A stretch of 64,000 bases of DNA. It comes from Perkinsela sp. CCAP 1560/9 (lineage: Eukaryota > Protista > Euglenozoa: Kinetoplastea). Within the stretch, counting starts at the first letter, position 1; every line of letters starts with the position of its first letter. Of the stretch, positions 5,545 through 62,722 are shown in pieces. Where the stretch lies: NCBI GenBank assembly GCA_965644495.1, contig CBFFSA010000008.1, positions 1-64,000 of the forward strand, given 5' to 3'. The translations under genes were made by a program, and so were the position numbers. Below the pieces are notes generated by a model. The model ran no database searches and was not told where the DNA came from. It saw only the letters and a list, made by a program, of their open reading frames with translations.

Positions 5545-6650
5545 AAGAAGAATCATACAAATGTCGAGTGAGAAAGGCAACTACGAATGGTTACAATCTA
5601 GTGCTAGGTTGGTGCCATCCCTTCAATTCAGTTTAGCGATTCGCCCCCGACTAGGACTACCTTTACAACAACTTCCCGACAGTATTTTATGTCCCGGTTG
5701 TAGGTTAATTCTGGACTCGAGAAAAGCATTAACACATATTCCAGGATGTTCTACATGCCCAGGAAGCAACGCGACAACAAAGCATAATGCGCTTGTTAGG
5801 TATATATACGAGCTATGCTTGAAAGCCGGGATACCGTGTGAACGAGAACCACGACAATTCGCATCGTACCGTTGTTTAGGTTGCTCAGCAACCTTGAACG
5901 ACGAACAACAAAAAGAGCATCACCATAGATGCAAGAACCGCAAACTACAACGGTCAGGACCTGATCTTTTAATCCACTGGGTTTCGGGAGCTGTATTTTA
6001 TGACTTTACGGTCATACATGAATTTTCTCCATCGAATCTAGGGAAAAAGAGCTGGCAACTAATGAAAGACGCGGCGAAAAGAAAAAACGATACGTATGTC
6101 AAAACGAACAAAATCCCTGCTGAACAGTTTGAGTGCTTACCAGTTCTCTCCGGAGGCTTGCTCCACGTGAATACCCGTAATCTGCTACACAATCTCGCGG
6201 ACAGGTGCCAGATAGACCGCGAATTCATATGCCAGGATTTTTGTTTATACATGCAAGAGCTGACAGGATCGACTTTATCAAGCCACCTAAAAAAATATGG
6301 AATTACCACAGCAGCAGATGCGACTTTAGGGATATGATTTTGGGAAATGAATCTAGAATAAAGGAAACAAAAAAAAACTACAGATTAGCTGGAGTAGAAG
6401 TATACGTTTAGAAATTTAGGATGATTGACATAATGGCCCTTCGTGGCACATAAAAAAAACTCTTACAAGTTATTTTATTAGTGTGCAAAAAAAAAAAAAA
6501 AAGTTTGTAGTATGTACTTAGGGGAGACTCTCAAAAAAAAAAAAAAAAAAAAAAAAAATATTGTAAGACCTTTCCTTATTGTAAGACCTTTCCTTATTGT
6601 AAGACCTTTCCTTATTGTAAGACCTTTCCTTATTGTAAGACCTTTCCTAT
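5545..6650 (+). mobile_element. Composite insertion: 5'-truncated CRE (RLE domain, ORF 5561-6337) + poly(A) + short 3' tail + poly(A) + five 18-mers
   Basis: TSD TGGAGTG at 5538-5544 and 6651-6657; CPGC..H..C and SGPDL..YDF motifs. Confidence 0.88.
6559..6648 (+). repeat. 18-bp tandem array (TATTGTAAGACCTTTCCT)x5
   Basis: Read directly. Confidence 0.97.
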
Positions 6651-6657
6651 TGGAGTG

Positions 6658-15735: not shown

Positions 15736-15740
15736 TCCTT

Positions 15741-17850: not shown

Positions 17851-17952
17851 AAGCTGAATCTAAAGATGAGATAAGCTAATACTTTAATTTTTTTTCTGAT
17901 GATTAGAGACTAATTTTCTGCGTCTGCCGATTTGATAAATAGCTATGCATCT
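17851..17952 (-). other. Near-exact inverted copy of 8588-8688 (CRE ORF end and 3'UTR)
   Basis: Reverse-complement match, differing by one T in a homopolymer. Confidence 0.9.
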
Positions 17953-31400: not shown

Positions 31401-32183
31401 GGGGAATTCATGAGAAGACATGCTCAGGGCGGCAGTTGTTCAGGTCAGGCCCTGACCTCGTGATTTATTGGTCAACAGGCGAACTGTTTTACGACCTTAC
31501 AGTGATTCACGAGCTTGCGCCGTCGAACATTAGTAAGACATGCGCGAACCTGGCAAAAGAAGCAATAAAACGGAAGCATCAAACATACGTAGAATCAGGA
31601 AAGATCCCTGACGTAGCTTTCCAATGCTTGCCGGTTTTTTCTTGCGGATCCTTGCATCAGAACACCCGATTCCTCATCCATGCTTTGGCGGACGCTGCGT
31701 GCCTTGATCGCCACAGAACAGAGATGGAGTTTAAATTACTGTTGCAAGAACAAAATGGGCTCGAAGTGTATGCGCAGCTTCGTAGTCACCTGGCCGACAG
31801 GAAGGTGCAAGAATTAAGTGTTTAGTGTGATAATCATAATCTATTAATGTCCTTTATTAAGACCTTCACCTTTATTAAGACCTTTAGGTAATACAATAGA
31901 AGTCTACGCATGGAAATTTAACCGAGGGGCTAATATCGGGTCAAATGCCCCGGAAGGGGGTTATAATTTTCAAAAAAAAAAAAAAAAAAAAAAATTCTAA
32001 CACACACTTTCATTCAAATATTTTCATCGCATTCAAACGAACACAGAATTTAGGCTCGTATTCCTCCGACCCATTTCTCTTCTGATACAAAAAAAAAAAA
32101 AAAAAAAAAAAAAATGATAGGGCGCATAAGCGCGCCCCTGCGAAGTGCGCCTGTACTTCAGAGGGTGCCTTCCCAGCTAGGAA
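25429..32183 (-). mobile_element. CRE family 2 element (RT+RLE 26628-28880, resumes 32121-32183) with stacked 3'UTR/poly(A) copies at 25429-26480
   Basis: GVQQGDPLGP, YLDD, RPGD..LDF; one in-frame stop at 27189; several poly(T) runs. Confidence 0.87.
28881..32114 (+). mobile_element. 5'-truncated CRE family 1 insertion (ORF to 31825) + poly(A) + ~95-nt fragment + poly(A)
   Basis: TSD TGATAG at 28875-28880 and 32115-32120; FIDD, CPGC, SGPDL motifs. Confidence 0.9.
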
Positions 32184-42158: not shown

Positions 42159-44386
42159 GTTTCTGTACCTTGTTGGTTTTTTTTATAACAATTTAATCAC
42201 TATGACACGCCCTGCTCGGGGAACCGCCAACACACCGAAGAGCATGAGTGTGAAGTCTGGTCGTGTAACTGTAAAAATACGGACGCAAGACGCGAGCAGC
42301 AAAGAAAAGATTGTAAAAAGCGATGCAGTAATTAAGAATTCTTCCACGGAAAAGCCGAAGAAAACACCACGCATCCGAGTCATTGGAGCCGAACCTTTAT
42401 CGAAGAACTGGGTCGATCACGGAACACCCACCATTACCCCGGTAAAGAACATCATCAAAATTACTCCGCAAAAATTTAAAATGGTCTCGAACCAAGAAAA
42501 CTCTGGAAACGCACGCGAAATCAACACACAATTTTCGTTTCCAACAGCTGAAAACGGGCAAGAGAGTGACATCGAAAGTGAGCGTGATCAAATGACGCTA
42601 GACAGTGATTCCGACGCTGATCAGGGAGAAATGGCGATGCGAAACAACAGCACAAAAGCAGCAGATCAAGTTCACAACACCGTAGCGAAATGGGGGAAAG
42701 GCACTGAATGCGTAATAGAATGGGGGTTTCGGCAGAATTCAGAGAGCTACAAGTCGAAAGGGACTGTTGTTGGACGAACCGCGCGAAAAGGCAATGTTAA
42801 AATTAAAGTATCCTACGTACCAGCCTTAGGAAACCAAGGACCCAGCGGCGTCTTATACCTTCCATAGTCGGACAAAATCAAAATCTACAGTCTTCGGGCG
42901 ACGAAACTTCTTCAAGTGGAGACGGCGATCCAGAACCTGGAGGAGGAATCAGAAAATGTCTCGTCTGACGACAGTGGCTGCGATCTCGACCCCCTCCCGG
43001 ACCTTCCCAACATCGAGCCATCCTTCGCGGTGCATGTGGTAGCAATCTTCCGTGCGATTATCCGAGGCTATGCCACTGTTGAACTTGATTCTGAGAAAGC
43101 AGCGATCTGGCACAAATTTATGAATGCGCCGCGAGACTCACTTGCTACAGTGCGGGATGCAATTAGAAGAACCCAAAGAGTGGGACACGTGCGAAAGGAA
43201 CGTAACGAGCTATCAGATGGCATAAATCTAAGTGCAGAACAACGAGCCGAACTAGAAATCGACAGGCGCGCGATCCGAAACGCGTTGCGAACAGCCAAAG
43301 CAGGGAATCTGGGGAAAGCCACTCGAATTCTAGATAACATTTACAAGGACTCCACTCTTTCGGCCGAAGAAAAATTTCAGAAACTACGAGAATTGCATCC
43401 TGTTGGACCCCCTATCCAAATACCGGAAGCTGACTTCCCACGCATCGGAGTTGTTGAAAGTTCGGAACTTCGTCTGGCAGTTGAGAAATTGGCTCGTGGA
43501 GCTTCCCCCGGACCAAGCGGGCTAAGTGAGAGTATGATGCGGTTGCTTGTAGACGATGATGTATCATGCCTTTCACTGTGCCACATGATTCGAGATGTAA
43601 TCAACGGAGAAGTTCCACTAAGCGTCCGGAAGCGCCTTACTCGCTGCAGAATCATCGCCCTACCAAAGCCGCAGAACGGGATACGGCCAGTTGCCATGGG
43701 AGACACTATTTTGAAAATCTGTGGATCTATTCTACTGCAGCGACATGAAACCACCTTGAAGACATTCTTTGCGCCAATTCAACGAGGAGTCCTACACAAA
43801 AATGCCTGCGAATCCATCGTCCACGAACTGCTTCAAGAATACGAGGACGGACATGCGTTGCTTACGGTAGATTTCAGCAATGCGTATAATACCCCGCGAC
43901 GCGATGCCATTGCACAAACACTGGTAAGCAATCCCATATTCAAACCTTTCCTGCGCCTGTTCTACTTTGAGTATGGGCTACCTTCGGAGCTCCTCTTCTT
44001 CGCGCATAATGCCCTCTACGCTGTCTTGGAAAGTTCTTCCGGAATCCGCCAAGGTTCAGCTCTATCCTCCATGTACTTCTGTGCCCTTCTACAAAGCCCA
44101 ATACGAGAAGTAGCCAGCCTATATCCCGACGTAACGATCAGGGCATACCAGGATGACGTGACCCTAAGCTCGAAAAACGTGTTGTCACTTGAGGCAGCGT
44201 TCTTGCACTTGCGCGAACTTACCAGTGATCTTAACCTGCATGTCAAGTTTCAGAAATGTGAATGGTTCCAAAAGAATACTACATTTGATGACGAACTATT
44301 GTCTCTGAACCGCTTAGGCGTTAACTCCCGGAATGATGCGCTTAAAATATTGGGAGCGTACATAGGAGCAAATGAGGTGTTAAAAA

Positions 44387-44474
44387 TTGTAAATTTTATT
44401 AAGCTTGTAAATTTTATTAAGCTTGTAAATTTTATTAAGCTTGTAAATTTTATTAAGCTTGTAAATTTTATTAA
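44387..44474 (+). repeat. 18-bp array (TTGTAAATTTTATTAAGC)x4.9
   Basis: Read directly. Confidence 0.97.
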
Positions 44475-47400
44475 TGGAAATTGATAAAATTCGGGCGGAG
44501 GCGTCCGGACCCTTTGAATCTTTGCTTTTGATCCAGGACAAACTTCGAAGGGCCACGTTCAAGCGGGGAAACCTCTTTTTGCCTCCTCGGCAGAGAGAGG
44601 GAGTAGCTTTACTCCGGCCGCGGGCCCTGAGCCGGCTGGCTTTATCTTTATCTTCAGGGAAGCGCTTTGCTGTCGCGTGGTGTACTACGTATGATAAGTG
44701 TACGAGGCTATGGGAAGGGACGGTTATATCGTGTGGGAACGGGTCCAGCCTGATCAGATATGATGTAGCTAAGGATTGTCTTTTTCCATTCCCTCCGAAG
44801 GATTCCCGAATTTTAATTCAAGGCGGAAAAGTAGCAACTCTGAAGGTAAAGGTATATCGCAAAAGGTTTAGGAATCGCAAATGCTGCTCTCGGCGCGGCG
44901 TCCGAGAGCAGAAGCCCATGATATCAGCTATGAACGAGGGGTTGAATATCGGTACCTTAAATATTGACACGTTGAAGGTTAAAAGCGCTGATGTAAACGC
45001 TCTGCGGAAGTGTCTCAGATTGCAAAAGGTGGTTGTTTTTATGAAGAGCTGTAAGGCTCCTATCTTTGGATTGCAAGAAACTAGGCTCACTTTTGAAAGC
45101 AGCGAACCGATAGTTCATCGTAAACTCTATATTGAAGGCATTTGGCTACATGTATATCTTATGAGCGCAATAAATGGATATAATGGTATGGCATTTATTA
45201 GCCGCATGCAATTATTTGTTGAAAAGGTCTCTGACAGAATTATGAAAGGGACGGTTCGTTTTGGAAGCACAAAAGCAACGCTATTCAATGTTTATTCCCC
45301 CATTGCTTCTTCAAAACAAGATATTCAGGAGGATTTTAATAAGTCACTGTTTGACGCTTGGCACGAGTCTAATGCAGCACTAAAAATTATCTGTGGTGAC
45401 TTTAATGCTCCTCTACAGAATCCGTCGGGCCGAAAATGCTCGTCAAAGAGAGCTAAGGCTTTAAGAGAGTTTCTTGAGAGTTTGGGTGCGAAATCAGCCC
45501 ACGAGACCTGTACCTCGCCTCGGAAATGGACTTTTCGTTTTCCACCAACCAGAAAAAACCCAGACGGGAAGACAAAACAATTAGATCACATAGTTTTTAA
45601 TTCGCGCTTTTGTTCAGCTGTACGTTTACAACGAGTAATGATGGCCCCTTGTCCGACACCCCATTGTGCAGTCATTGTAAATTTCCAAATTCGTTGGAAA
45701 ACCAAGGCCAGAGAACAGGAGGATAGGCCATATTGGGGCTCTCTTAAAAATTCAGAAACAAGTCAAAAATTTAATGCAAGTGTCAAAGCAGCTATGCGTG
45801 CTCCATGTAAAAGATCCCAGAAAGAATCCGAAGAAACTAATCGATGGGGCAGATTCTCTTCCTCATTGATCGCTGCATCGAAAACTCTTCCAAAACTAGC
45901 TAGCAGCGTTGAGGAAAAGAAATCACCAAATACTCACAATCTCAACTTAGGGTCAATAATACGGCTCGCAAAAAACAAGGAAAAATTTAAGGTATGCGAA
46001 CAACGCTATTCAAATGAAATGAACGAATGTATTATTTCTGAATGCAACAATATCGAGAAAGATTTAAAGCGAAAACCTAAATCCGCTTTTAAAGCAATTA
46101 GAACCATGCTTGGAGAACATAAGAAGGACTTTCCCGTTTTCGGAGATTCTCCACAAAAAGGCTTGATAGCTGTACGAAATCATTTTCACAGTACAGACAC
46201 ACTCTCGATAGCCTCACAATCCTTTGCTTTTACGCCTTCTAGTAAGTGCAAGATTCCTATACTAGACGAAATGTTTACAAAAGTGGAATTAATGGATGCC
46301 ATTTCTAAGATGAAGTATGGAAAATGCCCTGGAGCTGACAATATTCCAGCAGAAGTTTTAAGATCCATCGTTCAAGAAGACGAGCTAGCCAGCATCCTCC
46401 TAGAAATTATGAATGAAATTTACCTCACAGGGGCATCTCCGGATTCATGGAAAACAATTCTTCAAATTCCGATACCTAAGAAGGGGAATCTTAGCGAAAT
46501 CATCAACTGGAGACCTGTTTGTATAGTGAATCACGTCGTAAAATTGCTTAACCGGATGGTGTTAACAAGGATACAACCTGCGGTAGAATCTATGCTGCGT
46601 CCTAATCAATTTGGATTTCGCCCCCATCACTCCACAAATGGGGCACAAGCGGTTTTTAATGAAATTTCGTCCAAGGCGATGAGGGGTAGTGGTGTGGTTG
46701 TCGGGTTTGTGGATTTTAAGCAAGCATTTCCATCGGTTACATGGCAGGCTATTCGAGCAGCTCTGCAAGCTTTTGGTATCCCTGAAAACCTAGAACGAGT
46801 CATAATGTCTATTTACACAGATTTACGAGCATATATCAGGACTCCATACGGAAACACTGAAGAATTTCCAATTTCAACGGGAACACTTCAGGGTGATGTT
46901 CTTGCCCCTTACATATTTATTATGGTTCTTGATCGCGTTCTTGAAACTGCAATTGATAAAAACTCATACGGCTTGGTCACGCACTCTACGGGAACGAAAA
47001 GTCGAGGTGAAAAAGCTATTAGAATTTCGGATGTAAATTATGCAGATGACATTGCTTTATTTGCGCATACAAAGCAGGAACTCGGAAATATGCTTGAAAA
47101 ATTAGCAGAAGTTGCAGGAAAAGTAAATTTAAAAATGAACATGGGAATAAATAAAACTGCATGGATGACAATCGGAAAATGTCCCGATACAAATGAGGAA
47201 CTTGTCTTGCCTTCCCTCGGTCTAATACCAAAAGTGAAGACATATAGGTACTTAGGTAATGCAACAAACCCCGAAGATAACTTATCAACCCCAAGGGACC
47301 GGATTAGACTTGGGTGGTATACTATGCACAGGCTGCGTCCAGTTTGGAACTCACCTCTTTCAATTCTTTGCCGCACTCGTATATTTCAAACTTTAGTTAT

Positions 47401-48742
47401 GCCAGTTATTTCCTATGGTTGTAGCACGTGGAAGATCTCGACCTCCGATTTACTGAAAATGGACACTGAAATTTCTAAAATGAGACGAATAGTGTGCTGC
47501 GTACATAAATCCTGGGACGGTCAACGAAGCATGCGTCTTGAATCATTGTATCAGGGAGAAAACAAGCTCAGTACAGTCTCTAAATGTCAGCGAGCAAGTT
47601 TAATAGGGCATTTAGTACGACATTCACCAGTTTTCTGTAATACAATGTCATGGCGCGATGAAGATTCCAGTAAAAATAGATCAGTCTCCGAATTATGCGC
47701 GGAAGATCTCAATTTAAGTACAGCAGAGATGCTGTATTATCCAGTAAGTCGAACGTCATGGGCAAAGAAAGTTGATCAACTTCGCGATCGGTTGGAGCCA
47801 AGACCTTCATACACACAGTTCAATAAATCTGGATGGGAAAGAAAAATTTCTGCAATCACTAACACAAAAGCGTCACAATTCGTAGAAGAAGGTCCCAAAC
47901 CATACGCTCGGCGTAAAGGTGAATTGCATATATATACAGATGGTTCTCTATCCACAAAGAAAGGTGCATCTGTAGGTGGGTCTGGGTTTTATATTTTGGG
48001 ACAAGGTTTTGATCAAGTCATGGTAAGCAAAAAGCCCCCGGAAGATATTGAAAGTACAATTACAGCGGTTGAACTTTATGCGGTGATTGAGGCACTTCAA
48101 TTTTCCCAAGATTATGGAACAGACATCGTTGTACACACAGATTCGCATTACATATGGGAATTTTTTCACATCCACAGGCACCGCAATAGATTGATAGGGT
48201 TTAGTGACTTTCAAAATCCAGAAATCCTACGAAAGCTGTGCAACATTTGTATCAAAATTGAATCAGGATCGAAAAATTTGTTTTGCGTAAAAGTTCGCGC
48301 CCACGAGGGGAACCCCCATAATGAAATAGCGGATTGGCTTTCCAAGGAAGCAGGAACACTTGATCACACCAACGCCGTCACTTATAGGCGATGCTCCGGA
48401 AATGTGATAGGGAAGAGACTAATTAGCACCCGTGAGGGTATTGACAATCACCCAGCAGGAAAGAGGAACCCCAATCCTTCAAAAGAAAAATATCCTCCAA
48501 AAGAAAAATTTCAAACTAAACGTGACAGCAAAATAAAAACAAAGGAATCATCTAAAAACGACGTGATGAATAATATTCCGAAACGAACGCGAAGCGAAGA
48601 TCCAGAACGTCTAAAACTTCAACGAAACAACAAGAACCAAAAGGCTCAGACAAATATAGACGGGAAAAGTGAAATTAAACCAAAGCTGCGAAGCCCACAA
48701 ACAAAAAGAAAGCATTCTACAGAACGCGTTTCACGTGACTAA
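44474..48742 (+). CDS. APE endonuclease-RT-RNase H polyprotein (RTE/Ingi-like), 1422 aa
   Basis: LQET, VYSP, GDFNA, LDHI; QGDVLAP, YADD; YTDGS, HTDS, GNPHNEIAD. Confidence 0.93.
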   Translation: MEIDKIRAEASGPFESLLLIQDKLRRATFKRGNLFLPPRQREGVALLRPRALSRLALSLSSGKRFAVAWCTTYDKCTRLWEGTVISCGNGSSLIRYDVAKDCLFPFPPKDSRILIQGGKVATLKVKVYRKRFRNRKCCSRRGVREQKPMISAMNEGLNIGTLNIDTLKVKSADVNALRKCLRLQKVVVFMKSCKAPIFGLQETRLTFESSEPIVHRKLYIEGIWLHVYLMSAINGYNGMAFISRMQLFVEKVSDRIMKGTVRFGSTKATLFNVYSPIASSKQDIQEDFNKSLFDAWHESNAALKIICGDFNAPLQNPSGRKCSSKRAKALREFLESLGAKSAHETCTSPRKWTFRFPPTRKNPDGKTKQLDHIVFNSRFCSAVRLQRVMMAPCPTPHCAVIVNFQIRWKTKAREQEDRPYWGSLKNSETSQKFNASVKAAMRAPCKRSQKESEETNRWGRFSSSLIAASKTLPKLASSVEEKKSPNTHNLNLGSIIRLAKNKEKFKVCEQRYSNEMNECIISECNNIEKDLKRKPKSAFKAIRTMLGEHKKDFPVFGDSPQKGLIAVRNHFHSTDTLSIASQSFAFTPSSKCKIPILDEMFTKVELMDAISKMKYGKCPGADNIPAEVLRSIVQEDELASILLEIMNEIYLTGASPDSWKTILQIPIPKKGNLSEIINWRPVCIVNHVVKLLNRMVLTRIQPAVESMLRPNQFGFRPHHSTNGAQAVFNEISSKAMRGSGVVVGFVDFKQAFPSVTWQAIRAALQAFGIPENLERVIMSIYTDLRAYIRTPYGNTEEFPISTGTLQGDVLAPYIFIMVLDRVLETAIDKNSYGLVTHSTGTKSRGEKAIRISDVNYADDIALFAHTKQELGNMLEKLAEVAGKVNLKMNMGINKTAWMTIGKCPDTNEELVLPSLGLIPKVKTYRYLGNATNPEDNLSTPRDRIRLGWYTMHRLRPVWNSPLSILCRTRIFQTLVMPVISYGCSTWKISTSDLLKMDTEISKMRRIVCCVHKSWDGQRSMRLESLYQGENKLSTVSKCQRASLIGHLVRHSPVFCNTMSWRDEDSSKNRSVSELCAEDLNLSTAEMLYYPVSRTSWAKKVDQLRDRLEPRPSYTQFNKSGWERKISAITNTKASQFVEEGPKPYARRKGELHIYTDGSLSTKKGASVGGSGFYILGQGFDQVMVSKKPPEDIESTITAVELYAVIEALQFSQDYGTDIVVHTDSHYIWEFFHIHRHRNRLIGFSDFQNPEILRKLCNICIKIESGSKNLFCVKVRAHEGNPHNEIADWLSKEAGTLDHTNAVTYRRCSGNVIGKRLISTREGIDNHPAGKRNPNPSKEKYPPKEKFQTKRDSKIKTKESSKNDVMNNIPKRTRSEDPERLKLQRNNKNQKAQTNIDGKSEIKPKLRSPQTKRKHSTERVSRD

Positions 48743-51700
48743 TGGTATTTGAAATCTTGTGAAATATATTCCCCCCCCCATAATTTCAAATTTTGAGTAG
48801 CAATTTTGTAGCCCGGACAAGGCGAGCAGTTCTTATTCATGTTTTTTCTGTCAGGTTGTTTTTATTCTTATTACTATATTTATTATTTATTGTAGATATA
48901 TAAGGTTATAAGTTTTATGTTCATATTTATATGTTAGTTGTATTGTTTTATTTTAGCGCTCAAGTAGTTGATACCTTCAATTTGCGTTGAACTCTAGGGG
49001 CGTTGGTGGTTCCATTTCCTGGTTTATTGTAATGAAAAGACTCATCATTATGCGAGGACTCATTAAAACAAACATTAAATTTGAGATATGGCAAACAGTT
49101 GTGTGGTCAGTGTTTTTAATCTAAGGTGTGAAGATGTTTAAGGGAAAATATTAACCCCTTAACTGATTATATCAGTGTTGTTGTTGTTGTTGTTGTTGTT
49201 GAGGTGTTAAAAGATCTTCTTCTACGGAAGATGGAAAAACACAAATGCCTCTTCCGTCGACTCCTGCTCATGGGTCCAAGCAATCTCTCCCTCGCAATTC
49301 TACGTCGATGCACGATTCCGCGACAAGATTATCATCTGCGAGTTCATCGTCCGGAAGCAACCACGCGGCTAGCCGAAACCTTCGAAGACCACGTTCAACA
49401 AGTTCTTAAGAAATGGTGCGGAGCTGACACACAAGCCTTGCAACTAGCGGTCCTTCCTCAGAAACTAGGCGGCCTAGGATTGATCTCTTCGACTTTGAAG
49501 CAGAAATACTACTTTGAAACTGCTAGGAAATCTATTGTTGAGCACCCAAAACCCAATAACGCTCCAGTAGGTATAAAAGGTGGAGATAAAGTACACGCCA
49601 ACGGACAAAGTCGTAGTGAAGTCGCCCAGAAGCTTCTGAAAAAGAAGATGAAAGAGGAACACGAAAAGAAGGCTTGCGAGCTACGGAAGAATTCGCAATT
49701 GGAGCTTGTAATGAAACGCACTATGGAGAACAACTTGCATCTCGAAAGCACGAGCAATTATATCAATCCTTATTTATTTCGATACACACTCATGATGCGG
49801 TTAGGAATCAGTTTACCTCAAGCTCCTGCCAAAGTCACATGCCCTGGATGCTGCACCCAAGAATCCCCATCCAGTATCATTCCACATGTTGCAGGCTGCT
49901 CTCGTTGCTCTGGTATGAACTGCACACGCAAACATTCCCACATCGTCCGCTACCTATCAGAGTTATGTTCCAAAGCAGGTCTTCCGAACGTCACTGAACC
50001 GCGCATTCACTCCTCATATTACTGCACCAAATGTAAATGCTCCATCGCCGCCGACGTAGCCGAACAGCATCCATGTAAAGCACGCCGTATCCGCTCGGGA
50101 CCTGATCTCGCCATCATGTGGCCACACATGGGGGAAGTGCTCTATGACTTCACGGTGGTGCACACCTGTTGCAACAGTTACGCGAAACAGACCAGTTCAG
50201 CACTCATACAACAAGCGATCGATCGAAAAATCAAGAAATATGTCTCCGAAAAGGGTGTCGATAGTGAATACTTCCGTTGTCTGGCCACCTCAGACTGTGG
50301 CCTTCTACACAATGACACCAAGGCACTTTTGAAGGCAATAGCGCAGCGCGCAAAAATGAACTACGACAATGTACGACAGGGATTTCAACTTGAGATTGAA
50401 AAGATGTCCGCATACACGGTGGTATCTCAACTACGTGAGTACATTCCGAAGGATAACTGGATAGGTGGACTTCGCTTCTAGAAGGTCACTAAGTGTGTTC
50501 GCATACTCTCCCTCCCCCAGTCTTCTCTCACTTTGCTTCTTCTTTCACTTTGCTTCTTCCACCTAGTTGCTTGCTCTTTCCCAGCCAAAGACGATGCGCT
50601 AGCCGAGCTACTCCCATCCTCCTCTTCCTCCTAATACGCAGATCAGAATATTAGGTTCCTTTATAATATGTAAACTTGTGTAAAATAGTGATTGTATTTC
50701 ATATGTATACCGCAGACTCCCCCTTCAAAAGCGTATGAATGCCGCAGGCATGAGGAAGATTATAAGGAAAAAAAAAAAAAAAAAAAAAAAAAAAAGAATC
50801 TTTATCTTTATCTTTAAAGATAAAGAATCTTTATCTTTAACGATAAAGATACAGTTTCTGTACCTTGTTGAATTTTTTTTTACGTAGTATTCTCTCGGGG
50901 CCCAGCTCTTTTATGACGCAAACCAATACTCCTCAGAGCCCCGCACGCTCGAACGAGGACCACTCCTCATTCCATATGAGTGCAAAGGAAGGAGCTCTCA
51001 GCGTAGGCGCTCTCGCCGACGAAGAACGTGCGCACTCTCTCGGCAGTTGGGACCAATTCCAAGGAAACAAGCATTTGATTCGCGCTGTCAGCACATACGA
51101 CGAACAACTCTACACTACACCAATCCCGGCGAATATTCCTAAGGAATGGTTGGAACGCGCACGTCACATCTCCCAGGAAAAGGAAACCCCAGACACGGGC
51201 CACGTAGAGGCCGAAGACGAGGAGATGCAGCACTGTGGGGTGAGAAGGCAGAAAATTACTCACGAGGCTACACCCACATCAAAGATCCCCGATGAAGCTC
51301 GGACGCTCAAATCCGCAGTGAAGGATGCTCTTTCCCACCAAGGTCGAAACACTTCCCCATCGAAAGGAGTGACCAAAGCGGACTCGCGCTCGTCAAGGCG
51401 AACACCGGAGCCCCGGACATATTTCTCTTCACCGCGACACGCCGCAAACCAAAATAACTTCGCTGAAAAGACACAAACAAGAGAAGAGACTCGGGAATGT
51501 CCGGCCATGGGATGCACTTGGAGAAGTCTGCCGCACGGAGGGTCTTGGCAAGCGTTTTATAACCACGTCGCGTGTCGCCACGGAAACGGAGTTCCCGCTA
51601 CCTGGTGGGATGCAGAAGGCCGATTTCTTTGCAACTTATGCGGGCGCCATTATGACATCAACAAAAGGGAAGCTCATCCACAAGCCTGCAAAGGGAACGT

Positions 51701-52829
51701 TGCGAACCCCCAAATCCCATCGCGCGCAGCACACTCGAGCGACCCAAGCCACCTTCCGGGGACTCAAACTCATCACTCTGAACTTCCCTCGCTATCCTCT
51801 ATCTGCACGCTGCGCCTGAACACTTGCAAGGACGTGCCTCCACGTTGCCGTCAACTGTGGGGAGAAATTATCACCAAAGCAGCCCAAAACGCAGTCACCG
51901 AAAACTCTACAGCCGCGTGGACCCTATTCGCCATGCTCCCCAAGTGCTTACTACCCGCCCCACACCGAGGAGGACGTAAGAACCACACAACTTACGCATC
52001 ATACGTCCAGAAGTGCATGAACCGATGGCTCGCGCAAGATTATGTCTCCCTATGGAATGAAGCAGTAGACAACGCACTCAAGAAACAATCTGTAGCCCCT
52101 ACAACCGTTCACGACGAAGAGGAAAAGGCAGCTATCCGAGCAGAGCTTCTAGCTCGACAAGGCGAGTACTCTAGGGGTATGGCTGCACTCACGGCGGATG
52201 CTATGGCGCCTGACGACGAAGACACACTCCTCAAACTTCAGAGCAAGCACCCGCCCCGACATCCAGACAGTGACATCATCGACTATACGCCTCCGCCCAC
52301 AGCGCCCCTAATAATGGATGAACCCGTGGTAGCGAAAACTATCAAGAGCTTTCACCGGGGTTCCTCGTCCGGAACCATGGGTTTACGACCCGAGCACTTG
52401 CAAGCTGTACTCCTGGCGCACGTAGATAACACCGTGAAACCCCTTACTGCCCTTAAAAACCTCGTGAATCATCTACTAGCCGGGAAAGCACCCCTAGAGG
52501 TACAACCATATTTTGCGGGAGCCAGACTTTGCGCGCTTGAAAAGGGCGAAAATGACGTCCGCCCCATAGCAGCGGGAGAAACGATACGTCGATTGGTAAG
52601 CAAAGCGGCTTGCAATGCAGTGAGGAGCAAAGCCAGGGAATTTTTTAAGGGACTACAGTTCGGCGTCGCGACACCGGCCGGTTCGGAACGAATAATTCAC
52701 ACTTGCCGGCACGCAATGACAATTCATACGGACAACCCCGACATGGTATTATGTAAAGTCGACCTAAGCAACGCATTCAACAACGTTAGCAGAGCAACTT
52801 TCTTGAAACTTGTAGCTTGTAACTGTTCT

Positions 52830-55800
52830 GATCAACCTTTTTATTAAGATCAACCTTTTTATTAAGATCAACCTTTTTATTAAGATCAACCTTTTTATTA
52901 AGATCAACCTTTTTATTAAGATCAACCTTTTTATTAAGATCAACCTTTTTATTAAGATCAACCTTTTTATTAAGATCAACCTTTTTATTAAGATCAACCT
53001 TTTTATTAAGATCAACCTTTTTATTAAGATCAACCTTTTTATTAAGATCAACCTTTTTATTAAGATCAACCTTTTTATTAAGATCAACCTTTTTATTAAG
53101 ATCAACCTTTTTATTAAGATCAACCTTTTTATTAAGATCAACCTTTTTATTAAGATCAACCTTTTTATTAAGATCAACCTTTTTATTAAGATCAACCTTT
53201 TTATTAAGATCAACCTTTTTATTAAGATCAACCTTTTTATTAAGATCAACCTTTTTATTAAGATCAACCTTTTTATTAAGATCAACCTTTTTATTAAGAT
53301 CAACCTTTTTATTAAGATCAACCTTTTTATTAAGATCAACCTTTTTATTAAGATCAACCTTTTTATTAAGATCAACCTTTTTATTAAGATCAACCTTTTT
53401 ATTAAGATCAACCTTTTTATTAAGATCAACCTTTTTATTAAGATCAACCTTTTTATTAAGATCAACCTTTTTATTAAGATCAACCTTTTTATTAAGATCA
53501 ACCTTTTTATTAAGATCAACCTTTTTATTAAGATCAACCTTTTTATAAAGATCAACCTTTTTATTAAGATCAACCTTTTTATTAAGATCAACCTTTTTAT
53601 TAAGATCAACCTTTTTATTAAGATCAACCTTTTTATTAAGATCAACCTTTTTATTAAGATCAACCTTTTTATTAAGATCAACCTTTTTATTAAGATCAAC
53701 CTTTTATTAAGATCAACCTTTTTATTAAGATCAACCTTTTTATTAAGATCAACCTTTTTATTAAGATCAACCTTTTTATTAAGATCAACCTTTTTATTAA
53801 GATCAACCTTTTTATTAAGATCAACCTTTTTATTAAGATCAACCTTTTTATTAAGATCAACCTTTTTATTAAGATCAACCTTTTTATTAAGATCAACCTT
53901 TTTATTAAGATCAACCTTTTTATTAAGATCAACCTTTTTATTAGATCAACCTTTTTATTAAGATCAACCTTTTTATTAAGATCAACCTTTTTATTAAGAT
54001 CAACCTTTTTATTAAGATCAACCTTTTTATTAAGATCAACCTTTTTATTAAGATCAACCTTTTTATTAAGATCAACCTTTTTATTAAGATCAACCTTTTT
54101 ATTAAGATCAACCTTTTTATTAAGATCAACCTTTTTATTAAGATCAACCTTTTTATTAAGATCAACCTTTTTATTAAGATCAACCTTTTTATTAAGATCA
54201 ACCTTTTTATTAAGATCAACCTTTTTATTAAGATCAACCTTTTTATTAAGATCAACCTTTTTATTAAGATCAACCTTTTTATTAAGATCAACCTTTTTAT
54301 TAAGATCAACCTTTTTATTAAGATCAACCTTTTTATTAAGATCAACCTTTTTATTAAGATCAACCTTTTTATTAAGATCAACCTTTTTATTAAGATCAAC
54401 CTTTTTATTAAGATCAACCTTTTTATTAAGATCAACCTTTTTATTAAGATCAACCTTTTTATTAAGATCAACCTTTTTATTAAGATCAACCTTTTTATTA
54501 AGATCAACCTTTTTATTAAGATCAACCTTTTTATTAAGATCAACCTTTTTATTAAGATCAACCTTTTTATTAAGATCAACCTTTTTATTAAGATCAACCT
54601 TTTTATTAAGATCAACCTTTTTATTAAGATCAACCTTTTTATTAAGATCAACCTTTTTATTAAGATCAACCTTTTTATTAAGATCAACCTTTTTATTAAG
54701 ATCAACCTTTTTATTAAGATCAACCTTTTTATTAAGATCAACCTTTTTATTAAGATCAACCTTTTTATTAAGATCAACCTTTTTATTAAGATCAACCTTT
54801 TTATTAAGATCAACCTTTTTATTAAGATCAACCTTTTTATTAAGATCAACCTTTTTATTAAGATCAACCTTTTTATTAAGATCAACCTTTTTATTAAGAT
54901 CAACCTTTTTATTAAGATCAACCTTTTTATTAAGATCAACCTTTTTATTAAGATCAACCTTTTTATTAAGATCAACCTTTTTATTAAGATCAACCTTTTT
55001 ATTAAGATCAACCTTTTTATTAAGATCAACCTTTTTATTAAGATCAACCTTTTTATTAAGATCAACCTTTTTATTAAGATCAACCTTTTTATTAAGATCA
55101 ACCTTTTTATTAAGATCAACCTTTTTATTAAGATCAACCTTTTTATTAAGATCAACCTTTTTATTAAGATCAACCTTTTTATTAAGATCAACCTTTTTAT
55201 TAAGATCAACCTTTTTATTAAGATCAACCTTTTTATTAAGATCAACCTTTTTATTAAGATCAACCTTTTTATTAAGATCAACCTTTTTATTAAGATCAAC
55301 CTTTTTATTAAGATCAACCTTTTTATTAAGATCAACCTTTTTATTAAGATCAACCTTTTTATTAAGATCAACCTTTTTATTAAGATCAACCTTTTTATTA
55401 AGATCAACCTTTTTATTAAGATCAACCTTTTTATTAAGATCAACCTTTTTATTAAGATCAACCTTTTTATTAAGATCAACCTTTTTATTAAGATCAACCT
55501 TTTTATTAAGATCAACCTTTTTATTAAGATCAACCTTTTTATTAAGATCAACCTTTTTATTAAGATCAACCTTTTTATTAAGATCAACCTTTTTATTAAG
55601 ATCAACCTTTTTATTAAGATCAACCTTTTTATTAAGATCAACCTTTTTATTAAGATCAACCTTTTTATTAAGATCAACCTTTTTATTAAGATCAACCTTT
55701 TTATTAAGATCAACCTTTTTATTAAGATCAACCTTTTTATTAAGATCAACCTTTTTATTAAGATCAACCTTTTTATTAAGATCAACCTTTTTATTAAGAT

Positions 55801-55833
55801 CAACCTTTTTATTAAGATCAACCTTTTTATTAA
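52830..55833 (+). repeat. 18-bp array (GATCAACCTTTTTATTAA), about 167 copies
   Basis: Read directly; only about 3 variant units. Confidence 0.98.
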
Positions 55834-55847
55834 TTTAATTTGATAAA

Positions 55848-58800
55848 ATGGCGGACGCGTCCGGGCCACGAGAGTCCACTGAAATCATGAATCTTCTCTC
55901 GCGTTCCACGCTTGATCGGGGGGTTTTGTTTTATCCTTCCATGGGTAAATCAAGGCCTGCTAAACTCCGCGCGAGGTCGTTGCGCCAACTAGCGCGGCAG
56001 ATGTCTTCTGGGTGCGAACTGGCAGTTGTATGGAGGCTCGAGAATACATCAGATTTTAAGCTATGGGAGGGGGTCGTTGAACGTTGGAGTCCATTCCGTT
56101 CAGGATATCCTCGTAATGATGGTCGTTGGCGAGTGCTCTATGCTCAACGTCCGCGTGAAACACTTCCTTTTCCGCCTTATAATCCAGTAGTAGTACTGTG
56201 TGCAGCACGTCTGCGAGTGCCTAGGGATGTCTGTCGCAAGAAAAAGCGACATCGCAAATCGAGGAAACAGTCTGGCAAACGTTTTCTACGCGACTCGGAG
56301 GGTCCAAGAGACCTCGCTGTGAAGAAAATGCTCAGCATTGCAACATTAAACGTGACTACTCTAAAGCTGAAGGGTGATGATGAATTTTCTCTACGAAAAA
56401 GTGCTCATCTGTATGAGGTGATTGGTTTTATGAATCGGAAAGGAGTTCATATACTATGTATGCAGGAGACGCGCTACAGGTTTTCATCTACCGAAATGGC
56501 TGAAGTCCTACATCGCAAAGTACGTTACCGGAAAACGGATTATCATCTTTACCTCACATCGGCTCGCGCTAAAGACGCATATAATGGAATGGGTGTTATT
56601 AGCAGCACTCCACTGATTAATGTTTCAAAACTGACTGAGCGAATCATGGTAAGCGAATTTGAAATGGAGGACGGAGTTGGACACATTGTCAACGTTTATT
56701 CTCCTACTAGAGACTCTGCCGAGACAGAGATTACAGAGTTCCATGGGGATGTAGAATCCTGCTGCGCAGGAATTCGGGAGAACAATTTACACAGACCTCT
56801 CTTCGTTCTAGGTGACTTTAACTCACCACTTACACTTTTGACCAATAAGGATTTAGATCCACATGCAATTGCACGTTTCAAGGGATTATTGTGTTCAATC
56901 GGATGCAAATCTGCTCATGCTCTCTGTCCAAGCAGCCGAACATGGACATGCGAATTGCCAAACAACACACCAAAGAGTGAAAAACAAACGAACGTCAAGA
57001 AGCCAAAGAGAGTCTTGCGGCAATTGGATCACATATGTATTTGCAACAGATTTGCTTCTGCAATACAACGTCATAAAGTTATTATGGCACCTATTCCCAC
57101 AACGCACTGCTGTGAACAAGCGCTCGTAAAAATCAAGTGGAAATCAAGTACTTCAAAGGCATCAAAAATCATTCCTTGGTTTCAACTTCGTGATGAAACA
57201 AAACGAGCGGAGTACGTCAAGAATGTGCATAAGAAATATGAGCAAAATAGCGATGCACCAACCAAGTGGACAGCTCTCTCAAAATGCATTCTACAAGCAG
57301 CCAGAGAGCTCCACAGACCACAAAAACGGAATTCTGATAGAAAGCCCGCACGAGAGTCCATGGCTCATGGGCTTAGAGAGTTATACCAACAGAGTAAAAG
57401 TATAGCAACTTTTAAGAGCCTGGTTAAGGAGCATAGAGCAGAAGTCGAGACGGAAATCACCAATGAATGTGTAGAGCTCGAAAAAAGTATTAAGAAAAAC
57501 CACTCGAACCCATGGAGAACACTACGGCAAGTGTGCGGAACCTACCGCGTGTCCTTCACTACGCCTGGTAATGCAAAGAAAAATAAGCTCCAAGAGGTAC
57601 GTAAGCACTTTATGAATTTCACAGGGTACGATCGGGGAGACCCCAACATTTCTTTTAATGAAGTACATCTTCCCTTTATACCAATTTCAGATGGCAAGTT
57701 TACTGCCGAGGAGCTCTTTTATTCGCTTTCGCACTTCGGGAAGAATAGAGCCCCAGGGGGGGACGGTATTCCCATGGAGGCCTTACAAGCAATTTCGACA
57801 CATCAGGATTTTAGAGATTTATTGCTGGAGCTAATCAATGAAGTGCATGAAACAGGCGTTACCGAAGCATCATGGAAAGTCATTCTTCAAATACCTATTC
57901 CAAAGAAAGGGGATTTATCGCAGCTTTCAAACTGGCGCCCTATTTGCCTTGTAAACAGTATAGTCAAGCTGATGAATTTTATGATTCTTACTCGCATCCG
58001 CCCCAGCGTTGAACCACTTCTTCGAGACAATCAATACGGTTTTCGTCAAAATAGATCTACCGCTGGTGCGCAAACAATCATGAATGAAATAAAGTCCAAG
58101 GCATTTCGGAATAAAGGTGTTTGTGTAGCGTTCATTGATTTCGCAAAAGCATTCCCATCTGTATCTTTCGCTGCGATAAAAGCGAGTCTGAAAGCATTTC
58201 ACGTGGGCGTTCGTCTATCCGAAATGATCATGTCATTGTACTCAAATCTGAAAGGAGTAGTCCGCACACCTTTTGGTATCACAGATTCTTTTCCGATAAC
58301 TACAGGAATACTCCAAGGGGATGTGTTGGCCCCTTACCTTTTCGTGATGGTTATGGATCGCATTCTTAATAAGTCGCTGGACCTGGAAAATCGCGGATTA
58401 CTTTTGAGTTCAAGCGGGACAAGAAAACGGAACCTACAGGAAAAACGAATTTCTGATATTGATTTTGCAGATGACATTGTATTGTTCAGTGATACAAAGG
58501 AAGGTCTCCAGGAAATGATTGACGAAACGTCAAAGGATGCTTCCTTGGCGAACCTAAAGATAGCTGTAGGTGTTACAAAAACCGCATGGATACCTTTCGG
58601 TAAGGTTGCCGGCTCAAATAAGAATCTCCAGACAAAAGAACTGGAAAAGGTACCTAGAGTAGATTCGTATCGACATCTAGGGCATCTTCAAGACAATGAA
58701 ACATCATCTACAATCAAAGATCGTTTGAAACTTGCTTGGTCCTCATTTGCCCGCATGCGAGGAATATGGATTTCATCTTTAAGCTCTCATCTTAAACTCA

Positions 58801-59981
58801 GACTATACGACGTGCTTATATACCCTATTCTGAACTTTGGTTCAGGCGCATTGCACATTTCTCAAAAAATGTTGCGTTCGATTGATGTCGAAATTAATAC
58901 GATGAGAAGAATTGCATCTCAGTGCAACAAATTGGACGAGTATGGTTTTTGTTATCCTACAGACTCTCTCTACGTAAATACATCACGATTTTCCACCATT
59001 CACAAAGTTCAGAGAGCCAAACTTACCGGACACATGCTGAGACATTCTTCGAACTATCGAGAGCTGGTGCAATGGAGACATAAATCTAATTCGAGACGTC
59101 CTTCTCCAAGCGAAGCATGTATTTCAGACTTGGGTATAACTTTAGAAGAGGCATTGGTTTATGCTACAGATCGAGAACATTGGTTTCGTCTCACCGAAAA
59201 GCTAAAACTTTCACTTGAGCCAGTGGTTGACTACGAGCGTGCTACTACAAAAAAATGGAAAGCATTGAAAGCCACAGCTATCAAGAACAAGAGTTATAAA
59301 GAGCTACAATTTATTGAAGAATCTAGCGTGCCATTCCCCAAACTTAAATCTATACATTTCTACACGGATGGTTCAGTGAGAGTTTTGCGCGGAACACAAA
59401 CGGTGCGTAGCGGTGCTGGCGTTGTTTTCTTGAAGATTAAGGGTGACCCTGATTACTACTCTATTCCGTTGGAGGTGGGAACAAGTGAGAGGGCCGAATT
59501 ATTAGCATTTCGTGAGGCTATTTCGAAAATTCCAGAAGGATCACTCTCTTGCGTTTTTCATACTGATTCTTGTTACGTTTGGCAATATTTTCACAGTTTA
59601 AGATCACGTTTTCGCGTTGTAGGCTACATCGGAATTGCAAATGGAGACTTGATGGATCAAATCGACCATAAATTACGCGCGTTGAAGGGTCAAGGGGTAC
59701 AAATATACATGTGTAAAGTTAAATCTCACTCGGGAAATCCTTGGAACGAGGCAGCAGACTCGCTCGCATTGTCTGCATCTAGAAAGAAAGTAAGCGAACC
59801 TGAAATAAAGAGAAGAAAGTCTTCAAATTCGCAAACCACTGCTCAGCAGTTTGCAAAACGAAACGCGAAAAGTCAGCGTGCAGTGAAAGCCTCATCCGCG
59901 CCTAAACGTGAGGCAGAGGAAAGAGTTGTTATTCGCCAGAAAGTTACGAGAACTGGCGGTGGAAGGGGGACACCAAAGTAA
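55848..59981 (+). CDS. APE-RT-RNase H polyprotein, 1377 aa, paralogue of 44474-48742
   Basis: MQET, VYSP, GDFNS, LDHI, QGDVLAP, FADD, YTDGS, GNPWNEAAD. Confidence 0.93.
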   Translation: MADASGPRESTEIMNLLSRSTLDRGVLFYPSMGKSRPAKLRARSLRQLARQMSSGCELAVVWRLENTSDFKLWEGVVERWSPFRSGYPRNDGRWRVLYAQRPRETLPFPPYNPVVVLCAARLRVPRDVCRKKKRHRKSRKQSGKRFLRDSEGPRDLAVKKMLSIATLNVTTLKLKGDDEFSLRKSAHLYEVIGFMNRKGVHILCMQETRYRFSSTEMAEVLHRKVRYRKTDYHLYLTSARAKDAYNGMGVISSTPLINVSKLTERIMVSEFEMEDGVGHIVNVYSPTRDSAETEITEFHGDVESCCAGIRENNLHRPLFVLGDFNSPLTLLTNKDLDPHAIARFKGLLCSIGCKSAHALCPSSRTWTCELPNNTPKSEKQTNVKKPKRVLRQLDHICICNRFASAIQRHKVIMAPIPTTHCCEQALVKIKWKSSTSKASKIIPWFQLRDETKRAEYVKNVHKKYEQNSDAPTKWTALSKCILQAARELHRPQKRNSDRKPARESMAHGLRELYQQSKSIATFKSLVKEHRAEVETEITNECVELEKSIKKNHSNPWRTLRQVCGTYRVSFTTPGNAKKNKLQEVRKHFMNFTGYDRGDPNISFNEVHLPFIPISDGKFTAEELFYSLSHFGKNRAPGGDGIPMEALQAISTHQDFRDLLLELINEVHETGVTEASWKVILQIPIPKKGDLSQLSNWRPICLVNSIVKLMNFMILTRIRPSVEPLLRDNQYGFRQNRSTAGAQTIMNEIKSKAFRNKGVCVAFIDFAKAFPSVSFAAIKASLKAFHVGVRLSEMIMSLYSNLKGVVRTPFGITDSFPITTGILQGDVLAPYLFVMVMDRILNKSLDLENRGLLLSSSGTRKRNLQEKRISDIDFADDIVLFSDTKEGLQEMIDETSKDASLANLKIAVGVTKTAWIPFGKVAGSNKNLQTKELEKVPRVDSYRHLGHLQDNETSSTIKDRLKLAWSSFARMRGIWISSLSSHLKLRLYDVLIYPILNFGSGALHISQKMLRSIDVEINTMRRIASQCNKLDEYGFCYPTDSLYVNTSRFSTIHKVQRAKLTGHMLRHSSNYRELVQWRHKSNSRRPSPSEACISDLGITLEEALVYATDREHWFRLTEKLKLSLEPVVDYERATTKKWKALKATAIKNKSYKELQFIEESSVPFPKLKSIHFYTDGSVRVLRGTQTVRSGAGVVFLKIKGDPDYYSIPLEVGTSERAELLAFREAISKIPEGSLSCVFHTDSCYVWQYFHSLRSRFRVVGYIGIANGDLMDQIDHKLRALKGQGVQIYMCKVKSHSGNPWNEAADSLALSASRKKVSEPEIKRRKSSNSQTTAQQFAKRNAKSQRAVKASSAPKREAEERVVIRQKVTRTGGGRGTPK

Positions 59982-62722
59982 GTGTGAGTGCTTGCTGTGT
60001 ATCTCCGTACGTGTGCTAGAATATGCCTTGAGGAAGTTTTTATATTCCATTACTTTATGCGGTTTGTGTGCTCTAGTATTGGAGGCACAAAAACTCTGAA
60101 TTTGGAGGTGATAGAGATGGAAGTGTTTGATGTGAAAGTGCTAAGTATTTTAGCCGACTTTGTCGGTATTTTGGATTGGATTGGATTGGATTGAAACTTG
60201 TAGGCGAACATTTTCCGGAATTGTTCCCCTGGGCTAGCTGGTGCTATACGACAACTAGTGCTTTGACCTATCGTGACCACACACTCCTTTCGGATGAAGG
60301 CGTCCAACAGGGCGATCCCCTGGGACCACTTTTCTTTTCACTGGTCTCCTTGGAACTTGCAAAAGAAATCTATCACCAGGCCGACCTGGACTTGCAGCTA
60401 TGGTACCTAGACGACGGGATTCTCATTGGCAGGGCAGAAGACGTCAGGAATTCGTTGGATACAATCGCCAGAGTAGGTCCGCGATGGGGCCTATATCTGA
60501 ACATGTCCAAGTGCGAAATAATCACCCCCCCTGCCTCGGCTAACGTTGTAACCATATTTCCGGACATACCCGACGCCAAAATAAACGTGTGCGGTAACTT
60601 TAGTGTCCTAGGAAGCCCAATTGGGTCCCCTGAGTACTGTACTGAATATCTGCTGACACACGCGGTTGAGCCCGCTGAAATGGCCCTTGATGCCATAACC
60701 AGAATCCGGGACCCCCAGGTAGCCATGGCGCTAATTCGACAATGTGCTGGATTCTGCAAATTGGTACATGCTCTACGAACGACGCCCCCGCAATCAGTTA
60801 TGAACCTCTGCAAGCGGCTCGACGACTTCCTAATGCACGCGGTCGAATCCACTCTATGTCCTTTGCCTCCCTCCGCACGCGCCCAAATTCAGCGCTTGAA
60901 AAGACACGGAGGTTTCGGTTTAAAATCGGCGACCGTGCACGCATCCTCCGCTTACGCCTCCTCTGTAGTTTTCGCGGCGGCCACGGACTCATGGGATGCT
61001 TCAGAAGTGGAGGGCTTTCTACAATCGATTGAAGACGTGAATTCGAAAGTTGGTATCAGTCTACTCGACTCAAACGGACTCGTGCGTTCCATCCCGCGCC
61101 ATAAATGTGAAGAACTCTCCCCCAAAGCTCGCTTCACCAAGAGATCTCGCGAGGGAGAAACCAGACATCCCTTTGAACCCGCAAATCCGCCTTCCCTTCC
61201 TCGTGACCGCGCATTGCCTCATTCCGAAGACTTTCCACACGATACAAACCCCCTTTACGCATCCGAAGATTGCGTTGACGCGCAGCCACCCGACTGGGCA
61301 AGTAATAGCGTCCCCCGCCAAAAAGACATAAGTTACGCGATCTCTGCCACAGAGTTCTCGCACGCATATGAAAACGCCGACGCCCGGACTCGCGCACGCT
61401 GGGCTTCTCAGTGTGGTAAAGGAGCAAGCAGTTGGGCGTTCGTAACTCCTTCCAGAGACACGGGCCACGCCTTTAACCCCACAGAATTCCGCATCCTATC
61501 CCGCTGGTGGTTAGGTGTGCCCGTGTACGGGGAAGAAGGTACATGTCCCAAGGGGAACTGCACACTCCCATTGGACATACACGGCGATCACGCTCTCACA
61601 TGCAAGCACGGGGACGGTATCATCGGCCGTCACAACGCCTTGGCCGATCACTTTGCCGATACTTGCAGTAACGCACGCCTAGCTCCCCAACGGGAAAAAA
61701 GCCTCGGGAACCGGGGCCCCGGAGGCGCTCTGACTAGGCCCGGGGACGTCTTCCTTCCGAGTCTCTTCCTCGGGAAACCTATCGTGCTTGACTTCGCGGT
61801 CACTCACGCCCAGCAATCTAAATACACGGACACAGTCCGAAATGCTAGCTGGGTGGCCGCGGGGTCCTTCGCAGAGCATTATGCCTCAGAGCAGAAAGTC
61901 CGACAACGCCGTGAATCTGAAGATGCCGGAAGCGATTTCACAGCTATGGTGGTCGAGAGCTATGGCTCTTGGAGTGCCAGTGCTTTAGCCGTTCTCCGGA
62001 AGGTTGGAGAACGAAGGGCAAAAGCGTCCAACGGTATCTTGACAGACGAGGCCTCTACGCTCCGTCTCGTGACCGACATGAACGTAACATTGATGCGTTG
62101 CCAGGCACGCATGATGATTACGCGCCTGCCGGCTGTGGACCCCTTGCCCCCTTTAATCGAGCAATAGCACGATGACGGATGTGCAAGATGGGCCGCTCAG
62201 CCGGAACTCGAACAGCTGGTCCGGATGCTGGTCGATGCCGGCAGGGTCTATGCTCACGCCTAGTCCGCCAGGGCTAGGTACTCCAAGTGAGGTAGGACAT
62301 GGGTAGGGAACTTTGTTCCTCCCCGTCGGCCAGCATCATGCTCCGCGACCGTGCCGCTGTCGGCACAGGCCCATTGCTTGCGCCCTCTCGTACAACAAGA
62401 GAAGGGTTACCAAGGCAAGCTGGGAGAGGTCGAAAGACCCGGTCCGGAACGCGCGAATGGTTCGGGGAAAGTCTGCCCCTCCTAGCCGAGGGAGACCTTA
62501 CCCTCCCTGGAAAGCTGGTAAGATTGGTAAGGGGAAGTGGGTAAGATGGGAAAGCATGTATTTGCTAGTTATATATTTTGCTCGTTTTTAAAATGGGGGG
62601 AAGTGAGGGAAAGAAGTTGAGCAAGTAGGAAAGTAAGTGAGAAAGTCATACCGTACATACATATATAAAGTTAGAACTCGTACTCTTCCCCCCCTATTAT
62701 CTGCAAAAAAAAAAAAAAAAAA

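Follow-up and report, generated by a model that had tools for sequence, protein, structure and literature searches.

The window analyzed here, a stretch of 64,000 nucleotides (nt) of the kinetoplastid Perkinsela sp. CCAP 1560/9 (contig CBFFSA010000008.1, positions 1 to 64,000), is in its entirety a nest of retroelements. Two of these, D (44386-49199) and E (52816-60190), are intact elements without long terminal repeats (LTRs). Each encodes an apurinic/apyrimidinic endonuclease (APE), a reverse transcriptase (RT) and an RNase H, and each has an array of 18-nt units at its 5' end. The Pfam domains Exo_endo_phos, RVT_1 and RNase_H are found in both open reading frames (ORFs), and the two proteins are 35% identical, which confirms the description of D and E in an earlier note on this DNA as divergent, intact paralogs. 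As in long interspersed nuclear elements (LINEs), the endonuclease domain precedes the RT domain, and both elements combine a target-site duplication (TSD) with a defined 3' tail, (TGT)n in D and (GGATT)n in E, without LTRs.

Tandem Repeats Finder (TRF) reports 18 nt x 4.9 in D (44387-44474, 100% matches) and 18 nt x 167 in E (52830-55833, 99% matches), in agreement with the pure arrays of about 5 and about 167 copies described before. Among the 166 full units of E, 163 are identical, and the variants in the rest, one substitution and two 1-nt homopolymer deletions, are all singletons. The earlier note placed both arrays between the left TSD and the element. This holds for D, where the array directly abuts the TSD, but not for E, where 14 non-repeat bases (52816-52829) intervene. 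Were the arrays already present at the target? The 13-bp TSD pairs are exact (44373/49200 for D and 52803/60191 for E), excision of either element in silico restores the reading frame of the interrupted ORF, and the homology of the split halves to intact copies runs on unbroken at both junctions. Their position within exact TSDs, together with the in-frame rejoining of the interrupted ORFs, shows that the arrays came with the insertions and are not target satellites, as the earlier note had argued. The interrupted ORFs themselves, which that note called host ORFs, are by Pfam and homology RT ORFs of other retroelements and not host genes.

Homologs of D were traced to their contigs, which carry L numbers below, and 11 loci were tabulated (Table 1). 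A 5' array of period 18, or in two cases 19, is present in 9 of the 11 fetched relatives; six assemblies supplied these arrayed relatives, whose identity to D or E is 28-52%. Dependable copy numbers, taken from long-read contigs, range from 8.6 to ~72, and over the clade as a whole copy number runs from ~0.7 to 167. Tails of the relatives include (TGG)n, (TAGG)n, (TTAG)n and (AGGAT)n, and a microsatellite rather than a poly(A) tail ends D, E, L002, L004, L007 and L009. As far as sequence can define it, the hallmarks of the clade are this 3' microsatellite tail and a 5' untranslated region (UTR) made of tandem 18-19-nt mini-monomers. Of the 35 tandem arrays in 179 kb of sequence from the clade, 16 have period 18, versus 1 of 11 in 163 kb of contigs with distant non-LTR elements. 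The latter, the only matches from a scan of GTDB genomes, are non-LTR contaminants, 21-30% identical, in metagenome-assembled genomes (MAGs) and served as a negative control. A scan of Joint Genome Institute (JGI) metagenomes gave four loci, one of them new and useful. A eukaryotic contaminant contig in a Nitrosopumilaceae MAG (L015) holds an animal-type non-LTR element, 25% identical, with an 18-nt x 7.7 5' array (1-139) and a (TAAG)n tail (3575-3600), which hints at short 5' arrays in other LINE clades.

With the register anchored on the junction between array and UTR, nine units were compared. Position 1 is G in all nine, positions 10-13 are T in eight or nine, positions 17-18 are A in eight or nine, and positions 2-9 are variable. 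The layout is a variable stretch of 8-9 nt, then a U-rich tract, then AA/G, the slash marking the unit boundary. All arrays stop just before the G, and the unit length and end register seen in D and E hold across a deep clade; array starts have no fixed phase. Compared copy by copy, as the earlier note had suggested, the relatives share this end register over the full range of lengths. Units differ between lineages within one genome. The 13 variants of four long arrays all fall in the 5' 73%, with pure ORF-proximal units, a weak bias (roughly p = 0.02-0.05, estimated under a uniform model), and degenerate units lie at the 5' edge. Neighboring units have variants in common in L005 (units 21-22) and L002 (units 9-10), which points to slippage on the scale of units. 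Repeatedly, the 5' edge of an array or leader borders on a run of A residues, in most cases the poly(A) tail of the element upstream, perhaps because of a target preference or of head-to-tail insertion.

Is the array made anew at each insertion or inherited? The clearest evidence comes from a short non-autonomous element resembling a short interspersed nuclear element (SINE), with a 44-nt leader, an 18-nt array of ~12 units, a body of ~75 to 260 nt and a (GTT)n tail like that of D; it is probably mobilized by D-type elements. Its L001 and L006 copies are flanked by different sequence, yet the three degenerate units at the 5' edge are the same and 11-12 units are shared; only one unit and the order in which a G/A variant occurs set the copies apart. 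The two L006 copies differ by one unit and may be parts of one duplicated block. Judged by these sequences, the array of the SINE-like family is demonstrably template-encoded, inherited nearly unchanged and internal to the RNA. The 14-nt leader 5' of the E array likewise means that the array was not the last thing copied. Inheritance from the donor transcript, an alternative already named in the earlier note, is therefore established for the partner family, and we infer it for D and E from there. Sister copies with the same length and variants, which that note had listed as counting against its proposal of de novo synthesis, exist in this family related to D and E. No sister copy of D or E was present among the sequences gathered, and exact look-ups of both proteins matched no record.

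These observations establish the arrays as a conserved, lineage-specific, length-unstable 5'-UTR module that travels with the insertion. What purpose does it serve? We lean, with moderate confidence, toward the reading that D and E represent a clade of APE-RT-RNase H non-LTR elements in euglenozoans that has not been described before, with a heritable, length-drifting 5'-UTR array of mini-monomers, possibly trans-splice acceptors. The array would be part of the element RNA and be copied into each new insertion, as in the partner family. Units evolve in concert within each lineage, and copy number is very unstable; length would change as the growing strand realigns on the repeated template, in reverse transcription, DNA replication or both, and 5' truncation would offset this. 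The 3-kb array of E would be the extreme of the clade's length distribution and not a separate phenomenon. The host trans-splices every mRNA and transcribes its genes polycistronically, and the U-rich tract and AA/G of each unit look like a reiterated 3' splice-acceptor. An array might thus supply acceptors together with a sacrificial 5' buffer, so that capping and translation would remain available to a copy anywhere in a polycistronic unit. Support for this role comes from the euglenozoan context, from L009 and from an insertion in L003. In L009, a clade member from another species, the 3' part of a spliced leader is joined directly to a T-rich segment resembling the last unit, without an array. 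The L003 insertion (7224-7561, minus strand, within a copy of the retroelement family H) consists of ~208 nt of unmatched sequence, then 6.8 units, then A8. This structure suggests retrocopying of an RNA whose poly(A) tail had been added within the array, which is expected if RNAs are polyadenylated there upstream of the acceptor used.

Several points weigh against this interpretation. Inheritance was demonstrated in the SINE-like family and only extended to D and E. Seven clade copies from the window's organism have no spliced-leader remnant at the 5' edge of the array, so their templates were not spliced inside it. The last unit never carries the G of AG, the unit of L008 has no AG, and the U-tracts are short, at 4-7 nt. 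The conserved period of 18-19 nt is unexplained by simple slippage. A conserved hairpin at the ORF start was also considered and dropped, since its 4-bp stem corresponds to a conserved A-S-G peptide and is without compensatory changes.

Could the RT itself build the array? The earlier note proposed that, on reaching the RNA 5' end, the RT realigns and recopies a terminal 18-nt template in the manner of telomerase, with most of the array arising de novo at each insertion. In accord with this, the arrays lie inside the TSDs on the side made last, the E array is very pure with only singleton variants, relatives range from ~0.7 to 167 copies, and the period is held at 18-19 nt despite diverged unit sequences; out-of-phase joins of arrays to unrelated sequence, for example to a 5'-truncated H copy, fit template switching. 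However, the E leader shows that the array is not the terminal product, and the SINE-like partner has a longer leader still, with independent copies alike in edge variants and length. Degenerate units at the 5' edge and a pure ORF-proximal part are the opposite of growth at a 5' tip, although that trend is weak, and adjacent units with common variants in L005 and L002 are a further difficulty. The telomerase-like reading is thus partly contradicted, de novo synthesis at the RNA 5' end is unsupported as originally stated, and we regard it as unlikely. The singleton variants of E, the wide range of lengths and the lack of D and E sisters in these data nevertheless leave some room for expansion during reverse transcription. 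In retroviral RTs, a hybrid of ~17-18 bp spans the polymerase and RNase H sites; the clade has an RNase H, and the match of its array period to this spacing keeps RT-based regeneration alive as a minor possibility. A conceivable cycle is one in which RNase H would cut the template ~18 nt behind the polymerase and the freed end of the complementary DNA would re-pair with the neighboring unit and be extended again, allowing the RT to rebuild the 5' array in a manner akin to strong-stop transfer or telomerase. Such a cycle is doubtful, if less so than recopying of a terminal template. If true, it would set the 18-19-nt period, counter 5' erosion and be able to make a 3-kb satellite from a few units in one insertion.

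Alternatively, a few units may have been inserted and later expanded as ordinary minisatellites by replication slippage or unequal exchange, leaving the RT uninvolved. The alike adjacent units of L005 and L002 agree with this, as does the one-unit difference between the two L006 SINE-like copies, which may be parts of one duplicated block. But D and E look young, with intact ORFs and perfect TSDs, and 167 near-identical units would need very fast growth; moreover, 70-167 units were reached independently in three lineages, and the conserved period, end register and one-sided purity are left unaccounted for. We consider such expansion less likely than either RT-based route. Assembly error is far less probable again. 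Over-expansion of a repeat could explain the 3-kb E array, two of whose three variants are of a kind typical of sequencing errors (1-nt homopolymer deletions), but two independent contigs built from long reads of the same organism hold arrays of 70 and 71.7 units, and the E array, which a typical HiFi read would exceed in length, has unique sequence at either end. Least credible of all is an origin of the units as spliced-leader relics piled up by repeated trans-splicing and retroposition, as in dinoflagellate genes. The host does trans-splice, remnants have been retrotransposed, and L009 has one at its 5' end, yet units in a single genome vary by lineage and fail to match the spliced leader of that organism, array starts have no fixed phase, and 167 rounds are implausible. 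We rejected this origin on the unit sequences.

How do these elements relate to known ones? In host and domain order the closest are those of the ingi/L1Tc clade; in architecture, the 5' monomers of mouse L1. Ingi/L1Tc elements share with D and E the host phylum, a single APE-RT-RNase H ORF, dispersed insertion, TSDs of about a dozen bp and short non-autonomous partners (PMC12278014). Ingi/L1Tc elements open with Pr77, a conserved promoter/ribozyme of 77 nt, and finish in poly(A) (PMC12278014), whereas D and E have an 18-nt array and a microsatellite in these places. Rfam gave no match at gathering thresholds over 122 kb, and the 5' ends of D and E matched no ribozyme family in Rfam up to E = 10. 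No trypanosomatid protein appears among the homologs of D, the named ones being from fish, plants and fungi. In mouse L1, the 5'-UTR carries tandem promoter monomers of ~200 bp in variable number, of which the first is commonly incomplete; each lineage has its own monomer types, which undergo concerted evolution, and how the number of copies is kept up against 5' loss is an unsolved problem. The clade of D and E resembles this arrangement in having a variable count of lineage-specific, concertedly evolving units between the 5' end and the ORF, with the first truncated, but the unit is 18 nt instead of ~200 and there are up to 167 copies. Given polycistronic transcription and trans-splicing in the host, a promoter role for the array is not obvious.

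Three further systems offer partial parallels. As in telomerase, HeT-A/TART and Athena, an RT could extend a 3' end by recopying a short RNA, and the array may be an expendable buffer; D and E, by contrast, are internal insertions with TSDs, their units vary by lineage, and the partner's array is template-encoded. Dinoflagellate spliced-leader relic arrays are likewise short, tandem, retroposed 5' units in a trans-splicing host, but the units of this clade are not spliced-leader sequence. U6/L1-type chimeric retrocopies, produced by RT template switching, resemble an array joined to an H copy at 6559-6652, although there the phase of the junction varies and a repeat array, instead of a small nuclear RNA, serves as donor. 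Our literature searches yielded no account of the clade, nor of arrays like these in kinetoplastid, diplonemid or euglenozoan transposable elements. A long-standing puzzle is how LINEs retain a functional 5' end in the face of 5' truncation. The clade described here provides a very simple, countable system, with an 18-nt unit repeated 1 to 167 times, a non-autonomous partner and exact TSDs, in which inheritance and RT-driven regeneration are separable with long-read DNA and RNA from one organism. It also bears on retrotransposon expression in genomes without gene-specific promoters, where every mRNA is trans-spliced, and it shows one way in which mobile elements seed satellite DNA on the kilobase scale.

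Traces of trans-splicing are found in other retroelements. At the start of three H copies in the window is a core that agrees, base for base and in register, with positions 17-32 of 39-nt kinetoplastid spliced leaders, as tabulated in PMC3795323; it also resembles the Diplonema leader in that table. This 16-nt remnant is also found at the head of further retroelement copies in L002 and L006 (ENA assembly ERZ24900291), so this assembly derives from the same or a very close organism. Four of the six remnants, in families H and H2, start exactly at leader position 24. The remnants indicate retrotransposition of trans-spliced RNAs and by themselves mark the host as a euglenozoan. Insertion into spliced-leader genes, the habit of CRE/SLACS elements (PMC12278014), is disfavored because the sequences after the remnants differ and no spliced-leader intron follows. 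Directly upstream of the remnant in the element interrupted by E is a 29-nt duplication with palindromic content (50793-50851), which holds an inverted copy of the leader's 5' part and is possibly a snap-back product of second-strand synthesis.

Several arrays are joined to sequence other than a clade ORF. The array at 6559-6652 directly follows an A26 tract and has an A12 tract at its other end; the H copy joined to it (6653 onward) is truncated inside its RT domain, and its RT family is unrelated to that of D and E. In L003, an array is followed by unidentified sequence (1557-1502, minus strand). BLAST of array neighbors (13827-13150, minus strand; L003 7354-7561; 31879-32088) gave no informative matches. 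These out-of-phase arrays fit template switching onto abundant array-bearing RNAs along with polyadenylation in arrays, with rearrangement at the DNA level as the alternative.

Table 1. Positions of the features described, in the window and on contigs carrying relatives.
Feature	Sequence	Position	Strand	Basis or remark
Left 13-bp TSD of D	window	44373..44385	.	exact 13-mer again at 49200
D 5' array, 18 nt x 4.9	window	44386..44474	+	TRF, sequence; ends ...TTATTAA, followed by T
D ORF, APE-RT-RNase H, 1422 amino acids	window	44474..48742	+	Pfam
D 3' (TGT)n tail	window	49176..49199	+	sequence
Right TSD of D	window	49200..49212	.	exact 13-mer
Left 13-bp TSD of E	window	52803..52815	.	exact 13-mer again at 60191
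E 14-nt non-repeat leader	window	52816..52829	+	sequence; 5' of array
E 5' array, 18 nt x 167	window	52830..55833	+	TRF, sequence; 163/166 full units identical
E ORF, APE-RT-RNase H, 1377 amino acids	window	55848..59981	+	Pfam
E 3' (GGATT)n tail	window	60173..60190	+	sequence
Right TSD of E	window	60191..60203	.	exact 13-mer
5' array, period 18, 26.5 units	L002
5' array, period 18, 8.6 units	L003			first copy
5' array, ~0.7 unit	L003			second, D-like copy
5' array, period 18, at least 7.9 units	L004			different sample
5' array, period 18, 70 units	L005
5' array, period 18, 71.7 units	L006
5' array, period 18, at least 5.5 units	L007			JGI
5' array, period ~19, at least 1.4 units	L008			Logan
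5' array, period 19, at least 6.4 units	L011			JGI; 28% identity
No array	L009			spliced-leader 3' part and T-rich segment, then UTR
No array	L014			27% identity
SINE-like copy	L001	3029-3345
SINE-like copy	L006	10676 to ~11190
SINE-like copy	L006	15833 to contig end
Spliced-leader remnant, 5' end of H-type element interrupted by E	window	50826..50870	+	sequence comparison
Spliced-leader remnants, further H copies	window	2803-2838; 42160-42175		sequence comparison
Spliced-leader remnants	L002	near 336 and 13325	-
Spliced-leader remnant	L006	11193
18-nt x 5.3 array, unit that of the L005 70-unit array	window	6559..6652	+	out of phase with 5'-truncated H copy
18-nt x 4.3 array, same type, then unidentified sequence	window	13828..13904	-	sequence
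Two array-like units in 3' UTR of H copy	window	31850..31890	+	sequence
A-run at array or leader edge	window	6533-6558
A-run at array or leader edge	L003	3299-3309
A-run at array or leader edge	L002	767-775
A-run at array or leader edge	L001	3012-3028
A-run at array or leader edge	L006	10657-10675

The remaining repeats belong to other elements. At the start of the window, two 10-nt satellites adjoin each other just upstream of an H copy (1-1035, ~103 units; 1036-2478, ~144 units), the plus strand being purine-rich in the one and then pyrimidine-rich in the other. Two further H copies, at 16500-17134 (minus strand) and 17952-21790 (plus strand), point apart and are both truncated at residue ~544-562, and a 19-nt x 3.2 repeat (17083-17143) lies at the inner end of the minus-strand copy. 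In a third retroelement type, the RT/RNase H ORFs (9270-12362 and 34826-37072) precede direct repeats of 360 bp that recall the split direct repeats of VIPER/TATE or DIRS-like elements; this type is located at 9270-13210 in the window and at 8487-9425 in L005. Finally, in L001, a contig that is itself an 11-kb tandem repeat, a 177-bp satellite of ~18-20 units stands directly upstream of a 5'-truncated D-like ORF (4455-8309 and 15498-19454).

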